Part shown: positions 6,201 to 17,475 of the stretch, piece by piece
Layout of the letters: every line of letters starts with the position of its first letter
How positions within the stretch are numbered: position 1 is the stretch's first letter
Origin: Pelomyxa schiedti
Lineage: Eukaryota > Protista > Evosea
Direction of reading: 5' to 3'
Length of the DNA stretch: 64,000 nucleotides
NCBI GenBank assembly: GCA_020536535.1
Contig: JAHLWZ010000814.1
Span: forward strand, 53,789 to 117,788
The notes under the pieces: generated by a model
Seen by the model: the letters and a program-made list of their open reading frames with translations, nothing else
Databases searched by the model: none
What the model was told of the DNA's origin: nothing
Program-made: the position numbers and the translations under genes

Positions 6201-8941
6201 GATTTTCTCCCAAACTTACCTCACACAGGAAAGAATACTTGCTCTAGACGCATATATGTCTGATACTCAATTTCAGACCCATGTTCAGGTTTCTGTTGCC
6301 CTTTCTAGTCCGTATTTTTCTTAAGGATGATTAAACCAATCATTTAGTTGTACTCGAATTATAGGAGCCATCCTGGGATCGTCCAACTCTGTTCTGAAAT
6401 ATTTTATGGCGGAACTATAAAACCTATTAATCGTGTCGAAAACCCCAAATATAATGTACTTCCCGATGTACATTTAGTTACAGGACTTATGTGGGTGATC
6501 GGGGATTTGGGGAAAACAGTGGTTAATATCCTGGAAACCGTTTTTGAGCAAGCCAAGCAACCCAGTCGCTTTCGTTGCGAGCCACGCCCCCGAGCAAAGT
6601 GATCCTGACTCCCCCTCGTTTTTTAATGCTGGAGAAGCTCAATTGGTTGTACCTTTTTCCAAAGTTGTGCTTTTGCCAATTCTGAGGGCAGATTTGTTCT
6701 TTGATCCAAGAAGTATTATCAAAATCTTCAGACCTTGCACCAGATCCATCAGATATTGCAGTCGTCTGCCCTTTCCAACTTCAAAAGAAGAAAGTGCGTG
6801 AAGTGCTGAGGGCAGCTTCTCTAAGGCAAGAAAATACATTAACTCATAGTCTTAATTTGCTTTAGTCGTGTAAGTGTTCTGGGTGTTGATGAAATACAAG
6901 GGCAGGAGAAGAAAATCATTTTCGTGAGCTGTGTGCGCAGTGAGCCCTCGAATGTAAAGAAATATGACCAAAAGTAAGTTCTATCATCAGGCCTTTACTT
7001 TTTACTCACATGACTGAAGATTTGATGTGGGATTCATCAACAATCCCAAGAGAGTGAACACGACGTTTTCACGAGCAAAAGGTTTGAAAATTACTCTTGC
7101 CCGCGGTATGTGACCATTTTTTCCAGACTGCCTTGTAATTGTTGGAAATCCAAATGCACTCTGTTGTGACAATTTGTGGAAGACTATCATTGGTTGGTGC
7201 AAAGAAAACGCCAACTACAAGGAAGTTCCAAAACCATCGAGTATCACTTGTCCTGCACTGCATGCTGACATAGAAATACCAATAATATCAAAACTTTCCC
7301 CAAATCCAGAGATGGATTTTGAAGAAATGAACACTCAAACTACACCGCTTCAGAGTGTGCACCAGGTCATGGTTAAGTTGTCCAATAACTCACTGACTGA
7401 CGCTCCCAGCAGGTATGTGAGGACTTCTGGAAGGAACCAATTCAGTCGTGTCAACTTGACTTGAGCACTCTTTCCAACACCTGGGCAGAAGTCAAAATTA
7501 ACGAACCCGAATTCGTTTCCTGTGTGTTGGGTCATTTCCCTTCTAAGTTTCCTGATTTTCCCTCGATAGTGGCTCACTTTGGTGACAGCTGGCATCCTTA
7601 CACTCTTATGCGATCCCTGCCAGGGGCTCCCCTACCTCCTGAAACCCATTTTGAGAGAGGGAATTTCTTCAACATGTTCATTTTTTTCCCCGTCATCTAC
7701 CTTGAGTATTTGCCTTCTGCCTTTTTCACCAAATAACTTTCCTTTCTCAGAGTCAAGAGGACATTAGTAGATACGTTATATTTATGTGTCAACAAGTCTT
7801 TCCAAATGGAGCTAAGATTACCTCCAAAATATGTATCTCAACATTCTACAAGAGATAGTCTCAATTTCCCTAGGATGTGAACACCTGCTGTCTGAATGTT
7901 TCTAGGCCACCTTTTGCCTTGTCAGATATTATCTTCATCTCAGCAAAGGAAAGAATGATGTTTGCCTATCCACAAAGGACACCACCTCCTCAACTAAATT
8001 CTAGTCATAACCTTTATTCGCAAGAAAGAGCCAACACCTGCGCCACAGCCCCTTCGCATCTGCCAGCACAACCTCAAGTCCAAACACAACAGCCAGCTCA
8101 CCCGCTTCCAGTATCGCCTAAACCTCAATCTGAGGCCCCAGCACCAGAACGGGATACAAGGTCAGAACCTCAGCCAGTACCCAAGCCCCTTGAGAAAAAC
8201 AAAACGCAGCCACAGTCAGTAAAGTCCAAAACAAAGTCCAAAAGTTCCCCTAAACGCACAACCAAACAACCCCCAAGTAGCACAGAGCCAAATCTTTCAC
8301 AAAATCAACTCAAATCCGAATCCCAACTACCTCCATCGCAAACAACAAGTTCCTCTACAACAAGGTCTAAAAGAAAGCCCAAGTCCAAGTCAAAGCCAGA
8401 ACCTAAGCCTAAGGTTGAGGCCAACAAAACTCCCACACAACCAATTCCCCAGACACAAATCCCCAATCAGCAACAGCAACAGCAACAGCAACAAAACCAA
8501 AAGCAACACACAATAATCATTACTCGCAAAAAAGAAATGCTTCCTCCTGCTCCTCCCAAAACAACTGTGGCTCAGACCAAAACCAATCTCAAACAAAAAC
8601 AAAAAGTTCAATCACAGCCCGCCACACCTGCATCCAATGCGAACACTACAAAAGCCACAACCACCAAAGCAGGAACACCAACAATACTAAAGTCAAAAGC
8701 AAACACCAACACCAACACCAACACCAAAACCAAAACCAAAACCAAAAACAAAACCACAACAACAACCACAGCAACAACAGCACCCTCACTAAAGCCCCAG
8801 GCAAAACTGCATGTTCCTAGTTTGGGTGCTTCTCAATTATCACCATCATCCACAGCAAAACCAGTAGAAGTTCACGCTCAAGCAACAGCCAAACCCAACA
8901 CTCCACAACAAACTAGCACAAAACGCCAGCACAAATCCTGA
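3231..8941 (+). CDS. MOV10: MOV10/SDE3/Armitage-like SF1 (UPF1-family) RNA helicase with long P/Q/T/K-rich C-terminal tail
   Basis: LHDLLWIEE, VPGIAESRPSV, Walker A SGPFGSGKTATLVEII, ILDEAAQ, GDAKQL, NYRSHPGIV, FFNAGEA, VDEIQGQEKKIIFVSCVRS, GFINNPKRVNTTFSRAK, VGNPNAL. Joining of the 7877-8941 tail is inferred; it could be a separate gene or continue past the gap. Confidence 0.82.
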
Positions 8942-9048
8942 ACAACAGGCCACTGGCCCAGAAATATGTGAAATTCAAGTTTTTTTTCAAGCGAAAACGC
9001 AGTGTGTTTCTTATCAGTCCCACAATTGGAAACGGCAGAAAGAAACCT

Positions 9049-9148
9049 NNNNNNNNNNNNNNNNNNNNNNNNNNNNNNNNNNNNNNNNNNNNNNNNNNNN
9101 NNNNNNNNNNNNNNNNNNNNNNNNNNNNNNNNNNNNNNNNNNNNNNNN
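9049..9148. other. Assembly gap (100 N) flanked by a 121-bp exact duplication
   Basis: 8928-9048 is repeated verbatim at 9149-9269, typical of overlapping contig ends. Confidence 0.95.
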
Positions 9149-9645
9149 AGCACAAATCCTGAACAACAGGCCACTGGCCCAGAAATATGTGAAATTCAAG
9201 TTTTTTTTCAAGCGAAAACGCAGTGTGTTTCTTATCAGTCCCACAATTGGAAACGGCAGAAAGAAACCTTTCCTGCCTCGAGGCAGCATGGGTAAGTTAT
9301 TAGTATGCAGTCGATCCGTTGCACTCAATTCTTCTACACCAACACATTCCAACTCCTGGAGTCTCACCCACTCCATGCTCGAGATGGAGCCGAGCTGCAC
9401 TGTCTTCCAGTGACATCACTCGAGATTTGGCATTGCAACTGCGCAGCTCCGTTTCCTAAGGGAAGGAACTCTCAGAATCTGTAATCGACTCAGATCTAAC
9501 CAAACCTATTCCGGCATTAGTTTTAAGGAAACAAAAAAATTGCACATACATCGGCTTGTCGGTGTGTCGGTCGTCGTCAGCAACCGCGTCGGTTTTTTAA
9601 AGACTACCTTTGGAAAGAAGAAACGTGCTTTCTGTTACAATTACA

Positions 9646-12621
9646 ATGCAGACTGACTTGAACGTTGACATCAACCACGATTGGATTGACGAAGCATCGT
9701 CAGGTACATTTGGAGAACCGTTTGCGTTGTGTTACGCTTGAAAAAACCCACTATCGTTTGCTAATTCGATGCGCGATACGATGATCTGGATGTCTTAACA
9801 CTGCCGAATAGATACCGCAACAAAAAAGGGAGCCCCACAAAACACGGGACCTGCACCGAAATCTACTGCGTGGTCTACAGCTCCGCCCAAATCAACACCC
9901 TCTGGTTTGCATATGCCCTTGTTTACTTGAAATCGTGGATTTTTGCAGTAATGGGTTTTTTTTTTTTTTTCTTTGCAGGTTCAATTGACAAAGAAAGTTA
10001 CCCTGCCTTAGGACAGAAAACCAAGGTATTTTTTTGTTCTCCTTATGTAGCTCTTATTTTGTTTCAAGCCAAAAAAAGGAGCTGAACCTGCCAAGCCGTA
10101 ATTCCTTTTCACAAATATCTCTCCACTTAGCAATTATAGGCCTGCTCCAAAAGCTCCAGAGACCTACCGCCCACCTGCATCTAACACATATGCAAATAGA
10201 TCAGATGATAGGTTGATACCTTTCCTTTTCCCCAAAAAGAGTATAACAATCTTTGCAGAGACTCATCCCGTGGTGGGGATTACAGGAGTGGAGGAGACTC
10301 CTATCGTGGTGGAGATTCTTACCGTGGAGGAGATTCCTATCGTGGTGGTGATTCTTATCGCGGAGGCGATTCGTATCGTGGAGGCGATTCGTATCGTGGT
10401 GGGGATTCTTACCGTGGAGAGAGGGAATCACGCCCTCAAAGAGAAAAGTATGAACGGACTTCGCTATTGCTTTTTTTGTCAACTTTTTTTAGAAATCCAA
10501 TTCCCACAGCTCCCCCCTATAAAGCCTACGTCGGAAATTTGCCCTACGATTTCGCTGATATAGATTTGGAAGATATATTTTCCCAAACTTGTAAGGTAGT
10601 GAACAAGTTGACCCACTCTTTTTTTTCTTTTCCTGACTTCGCCCAGGTTCGTGCCTCGACCTTAGTCAGACGTGATGGCCAGTCCAAGGGTTTTGGCTAC
10701 GTTGAATTTGATGATGTAGAATCCCTCCAGAAAGCATTGGAGCTTGACGGGCAGCGAATTTCAGGGCGAACGATTTCTGTCGATGTGGCTGATCCTCCCA
10801 AAAGTAAATATACTGTGACAATCCACTTTTCTCAAGGAAAAACAGGTAGAGAATATGGCCGAGGAGGCTATGGATATGGCAGAGACAGCTACGGAAGTGG
10901 AAGCCGAGATGGGTATAGCCGAGATAATTATGGTGGTGGTAGAGATGGATACCGCCGAGACTGTTATGGCAGGGAGGGTGAGCGAGATGGTTATGGCGGT
11001 GGTGGTAGAGATGGGTATGGCAGTGGTAACAGAGATGGCTATGGCAGTGGTAACAGAGATGGGTATGGCGGTGGTAACAGAGATGGCTATGGCGGTGGTG
11101 CCAGAGATGGCTATGGCGGTGGTGCCAGAGATGGCTATGGCAGTGGTAACAGAGATGGGTATGGCAGTGGTGCCAGAGATGGCTATGGTCGTGGGTCTCG
11201 TCAAGAAGAACCGTCTGGCAGGTACTTTTAACAAAATTAGCTTTAATTCACATTAAATAGGCCTAGCAATGACTGGCGAAAGTACTATCCTTTTTCCTTT
11301 GTCTCCTTTGCCAAATGTTTTTTTTTCTCCTAGTAACCGCTCCCCTGACGAGACTGAACGAGATGGTCCTAAGGCTTCTTCGCCACTTCCCCCAACAGAC
11401 CACAGTGACCTTCCTGGTTTCTTTTTCATTTGTAAATTTTCAGTTTCTCACTCAATTTTAGCAAGCCGGACACCAGATCCAGTTGAGAGGTTTGACATTT
11501 AGCTTAAGTTCTTTCAAATAATCCCACATTCCAGACCCAAATCCAACAGTGACATGAATTCCCCTTCTGCCACCCGATCTTCGGCAGATTCTTCTGCACC
11601 CGAGTCACCACAGACCAAGCGGTCTCAAGCAAGCTTATTTGGTAGTGGAAAGTGTGTACGCTTCTTCACATTTTGTGCTGCTCACTTCATCAGGCCTCGG
11701 GATGAATTTGCGCAACAGAGAAGGAGAGATGAAGAATTAAGGAGAAAAGAGGAAGAACTCCGCCGAAGAGAAGAGGAGCTAGCGCAACGAGAAAAACAAT
11801 TGTCAGTGAGGTGAACTTTCCTTGCCAGAGTCTCGTTTATCTCACAGTTTTTGTAGCTCGGTCCCTGCCACACAACACCCCTCCCCTGCACCTGTAGCAA
11901 CTCCAGTTGCCCCTCCAGCAGTAGCGCCACAGGCTACTCCATCACATTCCGCTGCTAAAGGAATTTCTCAACCCCCTACACAGAATCCCTGGAACAAGCA
12001 GTAATGTTCCCCAATACATCCTTAACTGACGTTATGTAGACACCAAGGTGAATCACCGGTATCCGAGCCAACCCCCAAACCCACTCCGGTCGTTGCGGCA
12101 GAACCGGCAGCTGCTAAGTTACCCGATTCCCCAACAGAACCCTCCCAATTCCCCCCAATCAGGTCTTGAACTTTTCTATCCTCTTTTCTCTATTTGACCC
12201 CCTTTGCAGTGGAGGCAAAAAAAAGAAACCCAAGAAGAAGGCCGCAACTCCAGCTGAAACCAAACCAGTAGATAGCCACCCCGCGCCCCAAGAGCAGCAA
12301 CCAGCTCCTGAAACAGCAAAACCTGCAGTGAAAGCACCAACCGTGGAACCCACAACTAACAGTGCTCAGCCAACCGCAACACCAACAACTGTGGTACCAA
12401 CGCCCACCGAACAAGCACCCGCGAAGGAGCCCGCACCAACCGCTAATGCAACTGCAACACCAACACCAACTCCTACCGCAGCAGTAAGCACCCCCGCTAC
12501 AGAAGTACCCAACGAGCCCCCCAAAGACAAGGCGGAAGCAACGCCCACACCCGCCTCTGCTGCACCAGCCCAAGCACAGCCACCCAAGAAGAAGGGCAAA
12601 AAGAAGGGCAAGAAGCTTTGA
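9646..12621 (+). CDS. EIF4B: Eukaryotic translation initiation factor 4B (RRM, D/R/Y/G-rich repeats, coiled coil, P/T/A-rich tail)
   Basis: RRM PPYKAYVGNLPYD...KGFGYVEFDDVESLQKALELDG...RTISVDVA; DRYG-type repeats; LFGSGKPRDEF motif; start MQTDLNVDINHDWIDEASS at 9646; end KKGKKL. 3' exon joins inferred. Confidence 0.8.
10293..10418 (+). repeat. Coding tandem repeat 7 x 18 bp (GDSYRG)
   Basis: Seven consecutive copies with synonymous variation, upstream of the eIF4B RRM. Confidence 0.95.
10983..11198 (+). repeat. Coding tandem repeat 9 x 24 bp (RDGYG[GSR]G[GNAS])
   Basis: Nine consecutive octapeptide copies downstream of the eIF4B RRM. Confidence 0.95.
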
Positions 12622-12765
12622 CACTACTATCTACGAAAAGTAGCGAAACAAAAAACCAATAGTTTTTCCTTTTTAGTTTTCTGTTCATTTGTGATCTATT
12701 GCGCAAAAGGGAACAAAAAGGCGAACGAACGAACCATCGTTGGGAGCCACGAGTTCGTGATTTGA

Positions 12766-15700
12766 ATGGGTGAGACACCACGGGGGGGGAAAAAAAAAGC
12801 TGCATTGGCGAATGGGCAACAGAACGCACCACCCCAATCAATTAACACACCCATAATGATGACACTTAGCTTACGAGTTGCACACGCACGCGCAACACAA
12901 CGACGTTGCTGGCCTGGCTGCATGTTTGAAGAGGGGTGACAATATCAACTGTGTATTTAGCTTTTCCTCTATGTTTATTACCTTTCTTTTTCTTTTTTTC
13001 CCCCGCAATGCCCTAATACTCTACTGCAGCAGGTTTCTTTTTTGTTGTTTTCTTTCTGGCAAATTTCTTACACAAATCCATTGGGTTTCTTTCACTTTGA
13101 CAGCTGGTATGGGTTGCTTCCTTGACTTTTCTTTTCTAACTCCCAAAATTAAAGCCAGTATGTTCATCTCATTGGCTTCTATGATTTTTAATTCCCTCTA
13201 GGATGTATGGAAGGGAAGGGGAGAAAACTTCCAACTTTATTTTCTTACATCTCCTCCCTCATCCCTCCCCCCCAAAAAAAAATTCAATCTGGGACTTGGA
13301 CTAAACAAAGTCGGTAAGTTGTGTTGTGAGTGTACCCAAGTTAAAAAGTTGGGATGATGGGATGGGGATGTGGTGGAGAGTAAATGTGTTGTTTACTTTT
13401 TTTTGATGCAAATTTAGTGGGTATGCTACTCCCTAGGTTTAAGTGAGAACTAAATAAATTTCAAATAACTTCTTGCCTTGGAAAAGTTCAAAGTATTCCC
13501 ACATTTCACATTTCTTCTGTTCTCATTTATAAAATAGAATGTAAGCCTTCCCTCTAGCTATCTTTGATATTAATCAAAACTTGATCCATTGATTCACTTT
13601 GAAAGGGGGTGAGTCCTCATTACTTTACCTTCAAAAACTTAGTTGTTTTTTTAAAAAAAATTCAGCCTGTATGTTTCTTACTTTACTTTTTTCCTGAGTT
13701 TAACTTTGTTGATATGGTGTCACTCCTAATAGAGAGTACATTCCTTCTCCATTCCTCCCAACTCTTAACTAATTCGATTGTAGAATGTGTGCCTCTTTCA
13801 AAATCTCCTTTGACTTTTAACAAGGATCCAAGGACACCCCACTTCACATAGCGTGCAGACTTGGTCACTTTGAGGCAACTGAGTTTCTAATACAAAGTGG
13901 AGCAGATCAGACCATCAAAAATAGTGCACATCGAACACCAATGCAAAATGCGAGCCCCAAACTTGTTCAACATCTTGCAGGTGTGCTGCAGTTTTCCCTC
14001 TAAGATTAACATTCTTTAACAGCTTCAAAACAAATGACTCCCTCTACCCCTGTTGAACCTCCACCTCCTACCCCTCCTACACCTCCTACTCTTGATATAT
14101 CGCATAACGAAAGCTCTGGCTTGAGTTCAACGGAAGCCGTACTGCTGCCACCAGTTGAAGCAGCACCACTACCCCCAACTGAAGCAGCTCCACTGCCACC
14201 CGTCTCACCGTCACTGAGTACAACTCCAAGCCCCCCCACTTCTTCAACACCAACTACGTCTACAAAAACTGTGGTATGGCCAAAAAGTCGTTTCCTTTCT
14301 TCCAAGATTACCTTAGAATGAATTTGGACGAACTCTGGCGAATTCTGTACTGCCTGGCACGAGCGTTCCTTATGTGATTGAACAATGCATCACTCATCTG
14401 ACTTCACTTATTCAAAGCAATGCTCTTCCTTTGGATATATTTTCTCCTTTGCCACCTGGTCATGAACCAGTCACTGCACTTAAGGCAAACTTTGAGGTGC
14501 ATGATGGATCAAGTTCGACTCCATCTCCTCTCTCAACAACTCCTTCTTTGACTCCTCAAGTCATTGCAACTGTTCTTTTGACATACCTCCAGCAGTTACC
14601 ACACCCTCTACTTCCTGGCGCATACTATTATACCGGTCTGTAGAAATACTATGGGGTTGTTTTGTCCTCTCACTGTTTCCATTAGCTCTTCGAATAGCCT
14701 GCATTCCTTGTGAGCCTCACCGTCTTCACCAAATCCGAGTTCTCATCACCAAATTACCTTCAATACCACGTGCCACCATCCTGCGATTATGTTCTTTCCT
14801 TTCTTCGTCAAAAATCCCCCTCCCAGTAATCATTTCTCTATTCACCCCTCTTATACTGCGGCAGCAACACCAACAGACAACACACACAGCACCAGAGGAA
14901 CCTCAGCTTCACCACGAAGCAGCACAAATATTTGTTAGACTTATTTTGGAGAATATGGAATTCATGTCACTCCAAGTGCAGATAGATCCAGTAAATGAGA
15001 GCGAATACAGCTTCTTGCTCAAAGGGAAAGCTCAACAAGACCAAAAAGGTATCCGAGTTAGTTTCTAAAACTAATGCAATGTAGGAAATGATGTCATATT
15101 GGATTTTAAGAAAGGAGACCTCATCCATCTCATTGCGGTATACAAAGAGGGGTGGCTAGAGGGTGTTGCAGTAGGCGCAGGAGGTGGCCTGGGCTCTGGA
15201 ACCAAGGGCTTAGTACCTGTTCCAAGCATAGTTTTAATGGCCGTAAGCGAGAGCATTCCATTACCAGGATTGCCATCTGCAGTTAAAGTGTGTAGGAGTT
15301 AGTTTTACAACCTCTAAGAGTACTTTAGGCTGGCCCTGAAATGTGTGGTAAACAAGTTTCAACACCGCTACCAGAAGTTTGTATACTTTACTCCTTTTTT
15401 CCCCACCATCATTCAATCTGACCTCTTCAGGTACCTACACCAGTAACAAAAGAAGAAGTTCATGAGGTATTATTTTTCTCAGAGTTAACCTAACCTAATG
15501 GGGGAAAAAAGGAAAAAAAGAAGAAGGTAAATGGATGGCGGGAATATTTTCGTGATAACGTGATGTTAATAGGGCTTTCTCTCTGGTCTCAAATCTCGGA
15601 TTGGGGTATGGCCTACAGTCCTTATGCCAATTTTGACATTTGTAAGGGCAAGAAAGATGCTCCTACTTCTTCAACCACATCAGGCACTACAACTACGACA

Positions 15701-17475
15701 CCAACGCCAACACCAACAGCAGCTTTACCTACACCCACAACTACAGCTGCCACACCTCCTTCACTCCCACCAGGATGGAAAGAAGGGTTTGATCCAGCAA
15801 ACCGGAAGGCCTATTACATCAATATGTACACAAGAAAAGCACAGGTTTCTCTTCTACAGTCACTGCAACCTGAATAACAATCTCCACAGTGGGTAAGACC
15901 TACAGCTCCAGCAGGACCGGGAACAATTGATCCTGCACAACAGAAGATGATGATGATGCAGCAGCAACAACAAATGGTGATGATGCAACAGCAACAACTA
16001 CTCCTAGCACAACAACAACAGATGTTAAACGGGGGAATGGTTGGCGTTAACCCAGGAATGACTATGGGAATGCTTCCTGGAGCAACAGTGGACGCTGCAT
16101 TACAGGAAAAAATGGAGGCTTTGCACATGGCAGAGGTGGAAATGGAGAAGCGCCAGGTTTCACTCGTAGCTTCCATTCTTTTCCTGATAAGGCCGTCAGG
16201 AAGCACTCAAAAAAAAAGAGGAACACCTCGAAGCACAACGTCGTGTTGACCAACTTGCCAGAGGTGGTCAGAAACCCAACTGGCAAATAGAATATTCTGA
16301 AATCGAACTTCTGAACCAAATTGGAGAGGGTGGATTTGGTAAAGTACGTATTCCAAACAGAGGGACAAAGGAAAACAACATCATAGGTCTTTCGTGGAAG
16401 ATGGAGAGGCACTGAGGTTGCTGTAAAAACTCTTAAAGGTGGGGAAGACGCTTCTGTCCAGGAGGTGGCCGTTTTTTCCAAAGAAGTGTCTATTTTGCGT
16501 TCATTGCACCACCCACAACTTGTACTATTCTTGGGAGCTTGCCTATCACCTGTGCTTGCGATGGTATTTTTTTAATGGGTGCAAGTCCTATCTGATTTCC
16601 CTTTAGGTATCAGAATTTATGACAGGAGGCAGCTTGTACGATTTATTGTGGGTTTGACTTTGATAAGCTTCTCTGTAAATACCATTAGGTACAAGAGTAG
16701 AATTCTTCCCAATCCAATCCAACGGCAAGTTTACGCACTCGATATCGCAAAGGCTATGGCCTATCTTCACAACTGTAGACCCCCAATCATTCACCGGTAT
16801 ATTTGATCTATTTCTTTCTTTCGTACTCACACCCTATCAGGGACTTGAAGAGTGCAAGTATAAACCAAGTTCATTACACGCCAAGTACTCACAAAATTTC
16901 AGACATCTTGCTCGATGAAAAGGGTGAGCATGCGAAGGTATGTGATGTAGGCCTTGCTAGAGTGAAAAGTGACAACGTTGTTTTAACTGGAGCAGTTGGT
17001 ACATTCGCGGTATGCATCGAACAGCTCAACCAACTCATAAGAATAACCACGACAACTTACAACCCTAATCACAGTGGATGCCACCTGAGATGATGAAGGG
17101 TCTTCAGTACGACGAACGCGTCGATGTATACAGCTATGGCCTAATTCTGTATGAGCTTGTCACGGCAACAATACCGTTTGCCGGGCTGAATCCCACACAG
17201 GTAACCACCCTCCTGTAAAGCAATCCAATAACAAACAAACCACCCCAGATACAACACATGATAGCTACCCTGGATCAACGACCTCCCCTTCCATTTGATG
17301 TATGCTATGCTTAAACCCTCACAACAGCTCCCCGACTAGCAAACAACTAATAATTCAACCCCCGCAGCTTTCACCCAAATGGAGTACTCTTATCCAAACG
17401 TGCTGGGCTACAGACATGACACTCCGTCCCCCGTTCATGCGCATAATAGACACACTACCAACTATCAACATGTGA
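12766..17475 (+). CDS. Multidomain signalling kinase: ankyrin - RhoGAP-like - SH3 - WW - Q/M-rich - TKL kinase
   Basis: ATG G|intron|CT TAC GAG start (MAYELHTHAQHNDVAGL); ANK DTPLHIACRLGHFEATEFLIQSGAD; RhoGAP-like VPYVIEQCITHL...IATVLLTYLQQLPHPLL; SH3 LDFKKGDLIHL...EGWLEG...GLVPVPSI; WW LPPGWKEGFDPANRKAYYIN...QWVRP; kinase IGEGGFGKV, VAVK, HRDLKSAN, DVG, WMPPE, DVYSYG; TGA 17473-17475. Confidence 0.85.
12953..13832 (+). other. Array of 11 putative 3-nt micro-exons separated by 44-117-nt introns
   Basis: AG|NNN|GT at 13030 CAG, 13104 CTG, 13155 CCA, 13202 GAT, 13311 TCG, 13418 TGG, 13538 AAT, 13606 GGG, 13666 CCT, 13733 AGA, 13784 AAT; 8 of the 11 donors are GTATG, GTAAG or GTGAG. Confidence 0.72.

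Follow-up and report, generated by a model that had tools for sequence, protein, structure and literature searches.

Architecture of the locus

The window analysed here is a 64,000-nucleotide (nt) stretch of DNA from Pelomyxa schiedti (contig JAHLWZ010000814.1). The DNA is intron-rich and eukaryotic, with about 45% GC, and the intron density of P. schiedti is 7.4 per gene (PMC8887013). The forward strand carries a gene for a multidomain signalling protein composed of ankyrin repeats, a proline-rich stretch, and RhoGAP, SH3, WW, and kinase domains. Two exons encoding the first two ankyrin repeats are separated by an interval of 880 nt (12953 to 13832, forward strand), which has 35.7% GC and stop codons in all frames. 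Comparison with an orthologous gene on contig L001 makes it very likely that this interval is not one long intron but a series of 13 short spliceosomal introns and 12 coding micro-exons, eleven of 3 nt and one of 6 nt. The predicted elements and their L001 counterparts are listed below.

12870..12952, forward: ankyrin repeat 1 exon, ending in ...GDNINC (GGTGACAATATCAACTGT) in phase 0, with a GTATTT donor at 12953
12953..13832, forward: array of 13 GT...AG introns separating 12 micro-exons (eleven of 3 nt, one of 6 nt)
13030..13032, forward: micro-exon CAG (Q); in L001 CAA (Q) within the upstream exon, synonymous
13104..13106, forward: micro-exon CTG (L); in L001 ATG (M), final codon of the upstream exon
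13155..13157, forward: micro-exon CCA (P); in L001 micro-exon CCG (P) at 8687, synonymous
13202..13204, forward: micro-exon GAT (D); in L001 micro-exon GAT at 8733
13311..13313, forward: micro-exon TCG (S); in L001 micro-exon GCC (A) at 8814
13418..13420, forward: micro-exon TGG (W); in L001 micro-exon TGG at 8859
13487..13492, forward: micro-exon TTCAAA (FK), flanked by AG and GT; in L001 an identical 6-nt exon at 8947-8952
13538..13540, forward: micro-exon AAT (N); in L001 first half of the 6-nt exon AATGGG, 8991-8996
13606..13608, forward: micro-exon GGG (G); in L001 second half of the 6-nt exon AATGGG, 8991-8996
13666..13668, forward: micro-exon CCT (P); in L001 micro-exon CCT at 9071
13733..13735, forward: micro-exon AGA (R); in L001 micro-exon AGG (R) at 9112, synonymous
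13784..13786, forward: micro-exon AAT (N); in L001 micro-exon ATG (M) at 9189
13833..13980, forward: ankyrin repeat 2 exon, starting with GACACCCCACTTCAC after ...GGATCCAAG, encoding DTPLHIACRLGH... and ending in phase 1

The array introns measure, in order, 77, 71, 48, 44, 106, 104, 66, 45, 65, 57, 64, 48, and 46 nt. All 12 micro-exons are in phase 0 and contain no stop, and the spliced translation is open and links the two ankyrin repeats. It reads NINC-Q-L-P-D-S-W-FK-N-G-P-R-N-DTPLH, with fuller flanks of ...GDNINC and DTPLHIACRL.... The loop spelled by the array, QLPDSWFKNGPRN, has 13 residues encoded by 12 exons and 39 nt, almost one codon per exon. These 39 nt are the only part of the gene built in this way; its other exons measure between 17 nt and more than 300 nt.

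The original prediction, made from the DNA letters of the window, had proposed eleven single-codon exons at AG-NNN-GT sites, and all eleven sites lie where it placed them. Its intron lengths are likewise correct, except that a piece given as 117 nt consists of two introns of 66 and 45 nt on either side of TTCAAA. That exon had been regarded as optional and the loop as 11 residues long; its letter-for-letter presence in L001 brings the loop to 13 residues in 12 exons.

The first micro-exon lies within a tandem acceptor, CAGCAGGT (13028-13034). Use of the second AG would create a zero-length AG/GT junction and lose the Q codon. The first AG is favoured, because L001 has the Q inside an exon. A further AG-NNN-GT match (TAT, 13159), the twelfth in the interval, is a mere overlap of CCA with its own GTATGT donor.

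Site density and splice signals of the array

The interval contains 12 AG-NNN-GT sites, compared with 1.96 ± 1.31 (maximum 8) in 5000 dinucleotide-preserving shuffles, none of which reaches 12. It can be tiled into introns of 30-130 nt with 3-nt stop-free exons, a property found in 0 of the 5000 shuffles. The sites are strand-specific, as the reverse complement of the interval contains a single one. The AG-to-GT distances display one sharp mode at 3 nt. In the array, 11 sites have this spacing and one has a spacing of 6 nt, and direct AG/GT juxtapositions number two in the interval, namely a CAG/GT overlap at 13031-13034 and another 16 nt past a donor.

The donors are closely tied to these sites. 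All seven GTATG or GTAAG donors in the interval had been described as sitting 3 nt after an AG. This is the case: an AG lies exactly 5 nt upstream of 7/7 donors in the interval, versus 6/90 elsewhere in the window (about 6e-9). Strong, GTRWG-like donors are present in 8/13 array introns, compared with 2/13 introns of the same gene that are verified by RNA (Fisher p = 0.02).

Shuffled controls had been named at the outset as a yardstick for the array. They bear it out, with the caveat that the raw count of sites per 880 nt is not unique: G-rich antisense coding stretches contain 9-11, with irregular spacing and weak donors. Likewise, a loose chain scan that accepts 3- or 6-nt 'exons' and any GT finds chance chains of 5-10 in coding DNA. 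Once donors are filtered, nothing but the window array and simple tandem repeats is left in the 700 kb scanned. An apparent array found by the loose scan in a repeated contig family, WLWD, is continuous ankyrin coding sequence and was rejected.

No conventional hidden exon with ankyrin-like content was found in the interval, and a search for known RNA families gave only sub-threshold, plant-microRNA-like noise. A 27-nt imperfect inverted repeat (13440-13529) forms a predicted RNA hairpin with TTCAAA in its loop (-18.2 kcal/mol, z = -2.1). The hairpin has no counterpart in L001 (z = +1.2) and is probably due to chance.

An orthologous array in a second species

A HMMER search with the RhoGAP exon returned eight relatives and no self protein. 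The relative of interest, an 87-residue open reading frame (P0001, 51% identity), is located on L001, a 95.6-kb contig of an ENA metagenome assembly, and on the Logan contig L002. The L001 gene contains ankyrin exons 1 and 2 and RhoGAP, WW, and kinase domains, the kinase being 45-70% identical across aligned segments. Overall, the window and L001 proteins share about 50-58% identity. Ankyrin exon 1 matches L001 8551-8631 with 52% identity over 27 residues, and ankyrin exon 2 matches L001 from 9230 with 58% identity. The phase-1 intron after ankyrin exon 2 is common to both species.

The two ankyrin exons of L001 are separated, at the same place as in the window, by a gap of 589 nt with 29% GC (8641-9229). 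The gap contains 8 AG-NNN-GT sites versus 1.18 expected, and 0/5000 shuffles reach 8. It is divided into 10 intron pieces of 38-85 nt by 9 tiny exons and reads ...GDNVNHQM-P-D-A-W-FK-NG-P-R-M-DTPLHISCRL.... The loop first given as QLPDSW..GPRN, which was to be sought in orthologues, is thus encoded in L001 as QM-P-D-A-W-FK-NG-P-R-M. The presence of the same codons in the same order supports the proposal that the loop would be spelled codon by codon. The expectation of phase-0, stop-free exons also holds, the spliced translation being open in both species.

The loops of the two species are identical at 10/14 residues and 32/42 nt. Synonymous changes alone separate three codon pairs (CAG/CAA, CCA/CCG, and AGA/AGG). 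An ordinary upstream exon of L001 ends in the codons for Q and M, whose window counterparts (Q and L) are separate micro-exons, and N and G, separate exons in the window, form one 6-nt exon in L001. Every one of the 21 tiny exons (12 in the window and 9 in L001) is bounded by a canonical acceptor AG and donor GT and is a multiple of 3 nt in length; the latter has a chance probability of about 1e-10. Ten intron positions are shared and the window has three further boundaries. The shared positions indicate that the array is older than the split of the two lineages.

The introns themselves are not conserved. Orthologous introns are 0.477 identical, compared with 0.471 for non-orthologous pairs, which indicates that neutral sequence is saturated and that selection is confined to the codons and the splice dinucleotides. 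Within the window array, too, the introns share no similarity with one another, so that the signal recurs there and the sequence does not. The micro-exons are very probably kept in the mRNA and translated, because distinct codons are conserved in order, with synonymous changes and exact preservation of the frame, a pattern for which none of the other readings considered accounts. The loop (10/14 residues) is also better conserved than the flanking ankyrin helices (52-57%). Because it is the best-conserved part of the N-terminus, inclusion of the micro-exons is most likely constitutive. Third-position identity is 6/9 in the loop and 11/28 in the next exon, a difference that is not significant.

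The splice signals of the two arrays differ in detail. Branch-like motifs had been noted near several acceptors of the window. Support for this is weak, as the motif CT[AG]A[CT] is in place in 3/13 window array introns, not above shuffles. In the L001 array, branch motifs are significantly enriched and include clear, yeast-like TACTAAC, CTAAC, and CTAAT. The L001 donors (8641-9229) are mostly GTGCGT or GTACGT, whereas those of the window array are GTATG or GTAAG. The two organisms seem to differ in 5' splice-site preference.

Several other candidates were rejected as orthologues: P0003 and P0006 as RhoGAP-Ras paralogues, 55 JGI metagenome loci as generic ankyrin genes, P0004 because its contig extends only 326 nt upstream, and P0005 because it is on a short contig. 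A protein search with an alignment as query found nothing new. Two loci of the metagenome assembly ERZ21831265 (L060 6001-9086 and L061 6001-8224) are RhoGAP-Ras fusion genes with long uninterrupted open reading frames on contigs of 350-500 kb; they are RhoGAP-domain paralogues and not orthologues of the window gene.

The loop in the ankyrin hairpin

Ankyrin repeats follow a register of 33 residues, of which the canonical hairpin occupies 6. The ankyrin repeat 1 exon fits this register to position 27, as aligned by eye to the 33-residue consensus. The 28-residue piece of repeat 1 alone does not score with Pfam Ank, being too short, and was placed by its register and by the orthologue. The repeat 2 exon matches Pfam Ank with an E value of 2.5e-8, its residue 1 falling at profile position 3.

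A join of 12952 to 13833 is in frame, but the resulting NINC-DTPLH would provide 1 hairpin residue versus the canonical 6, that is, 5 residues short of the register. The original argument that a direct join is too short for an ankyrin hairpin is thereby upheld. The alternative acceptor that it named, 13825, fails: a join from 12952 is out of frame and reads NINCDPRTPHFT, then a stop, after 12 codons. With the full array, the hairpin would contain 14 residues, an insertion of 8 relative to the canonical ankyrin loop. QLPDSWFKNGPRN would then constitute a conserved 13-residue insertion in the hairpin that links ankyrin repeats 1 and 2.

Evidence from sequencing reads

The read data analysed come from a single study and comprise two DNA runs and two single-cell RNA runs. 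The contigs of both DNA runs span the array interval in one piece and display no differences. The array is not an assembly artefact, because the interval is covered in one piece by two DNA runs.

RNA contigs verify 13 introns of 36-68 nt downstream in the same gene. The introns of the window array (44-106 nt) and of the L001 array (38-85 nt) overlap this range and somewhat exceed it. RNA contigs of the two runs also verify a micro-exon of 17 nt at 16841-16857 (GGACTTGAAGAGTGCAA), located between introns of 44 and 45 nt. The exon carries residues of the kinase catalytic loop, with HRDLKSAN reading across its junctions. In L001 it is fused to the upstream exon, and the lineage of the window has one extra intron there. 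The gene and its spliceosome are thus shown to cope with very short exons flanked by introns of about 45 nt.

Several points weigh against the proposed array. Both single-cell RNA runs are at zero depth over 12674-14356, a region that includes the array, and no transcript-derived open reading frame was recovered in a protein search with the downstream exon. With all micro-exons included, the hairpin exceeds the canonical ankyrin loop length by 8 residues. The codons overlap splice-site regions on both sides, and their conservation could partly reflect splicing constraint. A single orthologue was found, the other candidate contigs being too short or carrying paralogues. Finally, we infer both the order of intron removal and the constitutive inclusion of the micro-exons.

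Proposed splicing of the array

Each short intron would be recognised separately by intron definition, and the introns would be removed sequentially, probably from 5' to 3' during transcription. After each removal, the next donor would terminate an exon that is already long, so that a 3-nt exon would never have to be defined. The process would be formally akin to recursive splicing, with one codon left behind at each step. Strong, consensus-like donors may compensate for the absent exon contacts. The sole real problem would be the crowding of two spliceosomes on sites 3 nt apart, which ordered removal would solve.

The original prediction held that successive 3-nt exons need an unusual mechanism. 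This appears unnecessary, as the introns are ordinary and short and their stepwise removal would always leave a long upstream exon. Sequential removal of short introns should suffice, and no new or exotic splicing mechanism would be required.

Alternative explanations and origin of the array

The strongest alternative concerns which product of the array is under selection. A long intron may have been repeatedly split by new AG-NNN-GT sites, with the codons arising as a by-product and splicing being the selected function. The lineage would splice short introns only, 3 nt would be the smallest remnant that keeps the frame, and a tolerant hairpin would have taken up one residue per split; the exons would still be present in the mRNA. 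The narrow size range of the introns, both those verified by RNA and those of the two arrays, is in line with such fission, as is a loop 8 residues longer than the canonical hairpin. The converse would require thirteen independent insertions into 39 nt of coding sequence that already existed, which would be extraordinary. However, the loop is conserved above its flanking helices, which suggests that the peptide itself matters now. The three boundaries absent in L001 would require exact intron losses, and the direction of change needs an outgroup, two species being compared here. Fission with selection on splicing alone is possible but doubtful.

As to origin, either a long intron was divided or 10-13 introns entered a 39-nt coding stretch. 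We tentatively entertain the idea that the peptide was born from an intron codon by codon, and that the 13-residue insertion then gained a function and was frozen together with its introns across a deep divergence.

An array of cassettes, in which any subset of the 12 micro-exons could be skipped to yield loop variants that tune binding, is improbable. Skipping would always be in frame, given that every exon is in phase 0, lacks a stop, and has a length divisible by 3, and schistosome micro-exon genes use symmetric micro-exons in this manner (PMC10526429). Yet conservation extends to nearly all codons and to their order even though the introns are saturated, the pattern of a fixed peptide, and the strong donors favour constitutive use.

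Removal of 12953 to 13832 in one step as a single 880-nt intron, with the AG-NNN-GT sites serving as decoys or U1 landing sites or arising by chance, is very unlikely. In its favour, both ends could serve as splice sites (donor GTATTT at 12953, acceptor at 13832), joining them preserves the frame, and the RNA runs, at zero depth there, do not contradict it. Such an intron would leave unexplained a site count that no shuffle reaches, the AG at -5 of all seven strong donors, and the strand specificity of the sites, with one in the reverse complement. Nor would it account for codons conserved with synonymous changes or for orthologue exons whose lengths are all multiples of 3. Q and L/M are exonic in L001, and the join deletes 5 residues of the ankyrin register.

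An origin by degenerate tandem repetition or by insertion of mobile elements (introners), whose unit ends would happen to carry AG...GT, has a negligible likelihood: a few similarities of 14-26 nt exist around some sites (families D2, D5, and D9), but local alignment scores between pieces are barely above shuffles with the best matches in T-rich runs, a tandem repeat search (TRF) shows trivial repeats only, terminal inverted repeats and target-site duplications are lacking, and the codons all differ. Repeats and mobile elements were ruled out on the basis of the piece alignments, TRF, and a repeat finder.

Other features of the gene and its neighbour

In the frame of the first ankyrin exon, stops occur shortly before 12870 and an ATG is lacking; the exon begins after an acceptor at 12868-12869. 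The gene probably opens with a 4-nt coding exon, ATGG, which would supply the start.

12766..12769, forward: putative start exon ATGG (ATG and the first base of codon 2), with a GTGAGA donor and a 100-nt intron to 12869

When joined to CTTACGAG, ATGG gives M-A-Y-E-L. In the L001 orthologue, the first exon is an ordinary one that contains an ATG of its own, and the N-terminus is longer by about 10 residues.

Past 15467, an RNA contig has a loose end, AAAAAAAGAAGAAG, after which it matches the window from 15573 onward. This points to an E/K-rich micro-exon of about 15 nt near 15512-15526, located between two short introns; its acceptor is approximate.

The contig of one DNA run contains a CCG insertion after 12550 and a C>A change at 12622, an allelic or between-cell difference. 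Both variants lie in, or just past, the Pro/Thr/Ala-rich C-terminus of the upstream gene (open reading frame 12166-12621, ending KKKGKKKGKKL).

Comparison with known splicing systems

Single exons of 1-3 nt are known, but a run of twelve tiny exons, uninterrupted by a normal exon and present in two distant species, strains splice-site recognition to its limit. An acceptor and a donor are separated by only 3 nt eleven times, which leaves no room for exon-bound factors or exon definition. The array is thus a natural test bed for intron definition acting alone, for the order in which neighbouring introns are removed, for donor strength with no exon behind it, and for intron multiplication by fission. 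If true, fission codon by codon would be a new route to intron multiplication and to the de novo origin of a peptide. In practical terms, gene predictors, even transcript-guided pipelines, silently drop residues in such genomes, and the predicted product of this gene would be truncated or would lack its ankyrin module.

In recursive splicing of long Drosophila introns, ratchet points consist of AG/GT, a zero-length exon, so that nothing is left in the mRNA of introns measuring tens of kb. The proposed splicing of the array resembles this process in its stepwise removal through composite acceptor-donor sites, the upstream exon being joined to a new donor at each step. It differs in that the spacing is 3 (or 6) nt, the remnants would be translated, and the whole interval is less than 1 kb.

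Fungal stwintrons also require consecutive splicing reactions, an internal intron interrupting a splice site of the outer intron (PMC9024468, PMC5639578). The array would share with them the need for several consecutive reactions within one interval. Stwintrons are nested, whereas the array introns stand side by side and are independent.

Schistosome micro-exon genes (MEGs), to which the original prediction likened the array, contain runs of symmetric exons, down to 3 bp, whose skipping is safe for the frame (PMC10526429). The likeness is partial and lies in these symmetric tiny exons. In MEGs, micro-exons occur nearly throughout, introns reach 5 kb, and the products are secreted, variable, and alternatively spliced (PMC10526429). 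The window gene, in contrast, has micro-exons in a 39-nt segment only, tiny introns of 44-106 nt, a cytosolic-type signalling protein, and a conserved peptide. Its predicted domain set (Ank, RhoGAP, SH3, WW, and kinase) and the conserved peptide argue against a secreted, variable product of the MEG type.

The closest relatives of the array are the ultra-short micro-exons (1-15 nt) of plants and animals, such as the 1-nt exon of APC11 and VPS55 and the 3-nt exon of MAP4K5 (PMC8831610, PMC8632122). As in the array, coding exons of 1-6 nt there lie between canonical GT-AG introns, are conserved across species, and are missed by gene predictors (PMC8831610, PMC8632122). The strong donors of the array also have a parallel in those conserved at plant 1-nt exons (PMC8831610). 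Known ultra-short micro-exons are single or stand two or three together, as in a pair of 5 and 12 nt (PMC8831610), while the array has 12 consecutive ones with no normal exon between them. The introns of the two arrays, moreover, are minimal (38-106 nt), unlike those of the known cases. Literature searches found no description of long runs of consecutive single-codon exons. We regard the array as a new, extreme variant of coding micro-exons, distinct from both the schistosome family and classical recursive splicing.

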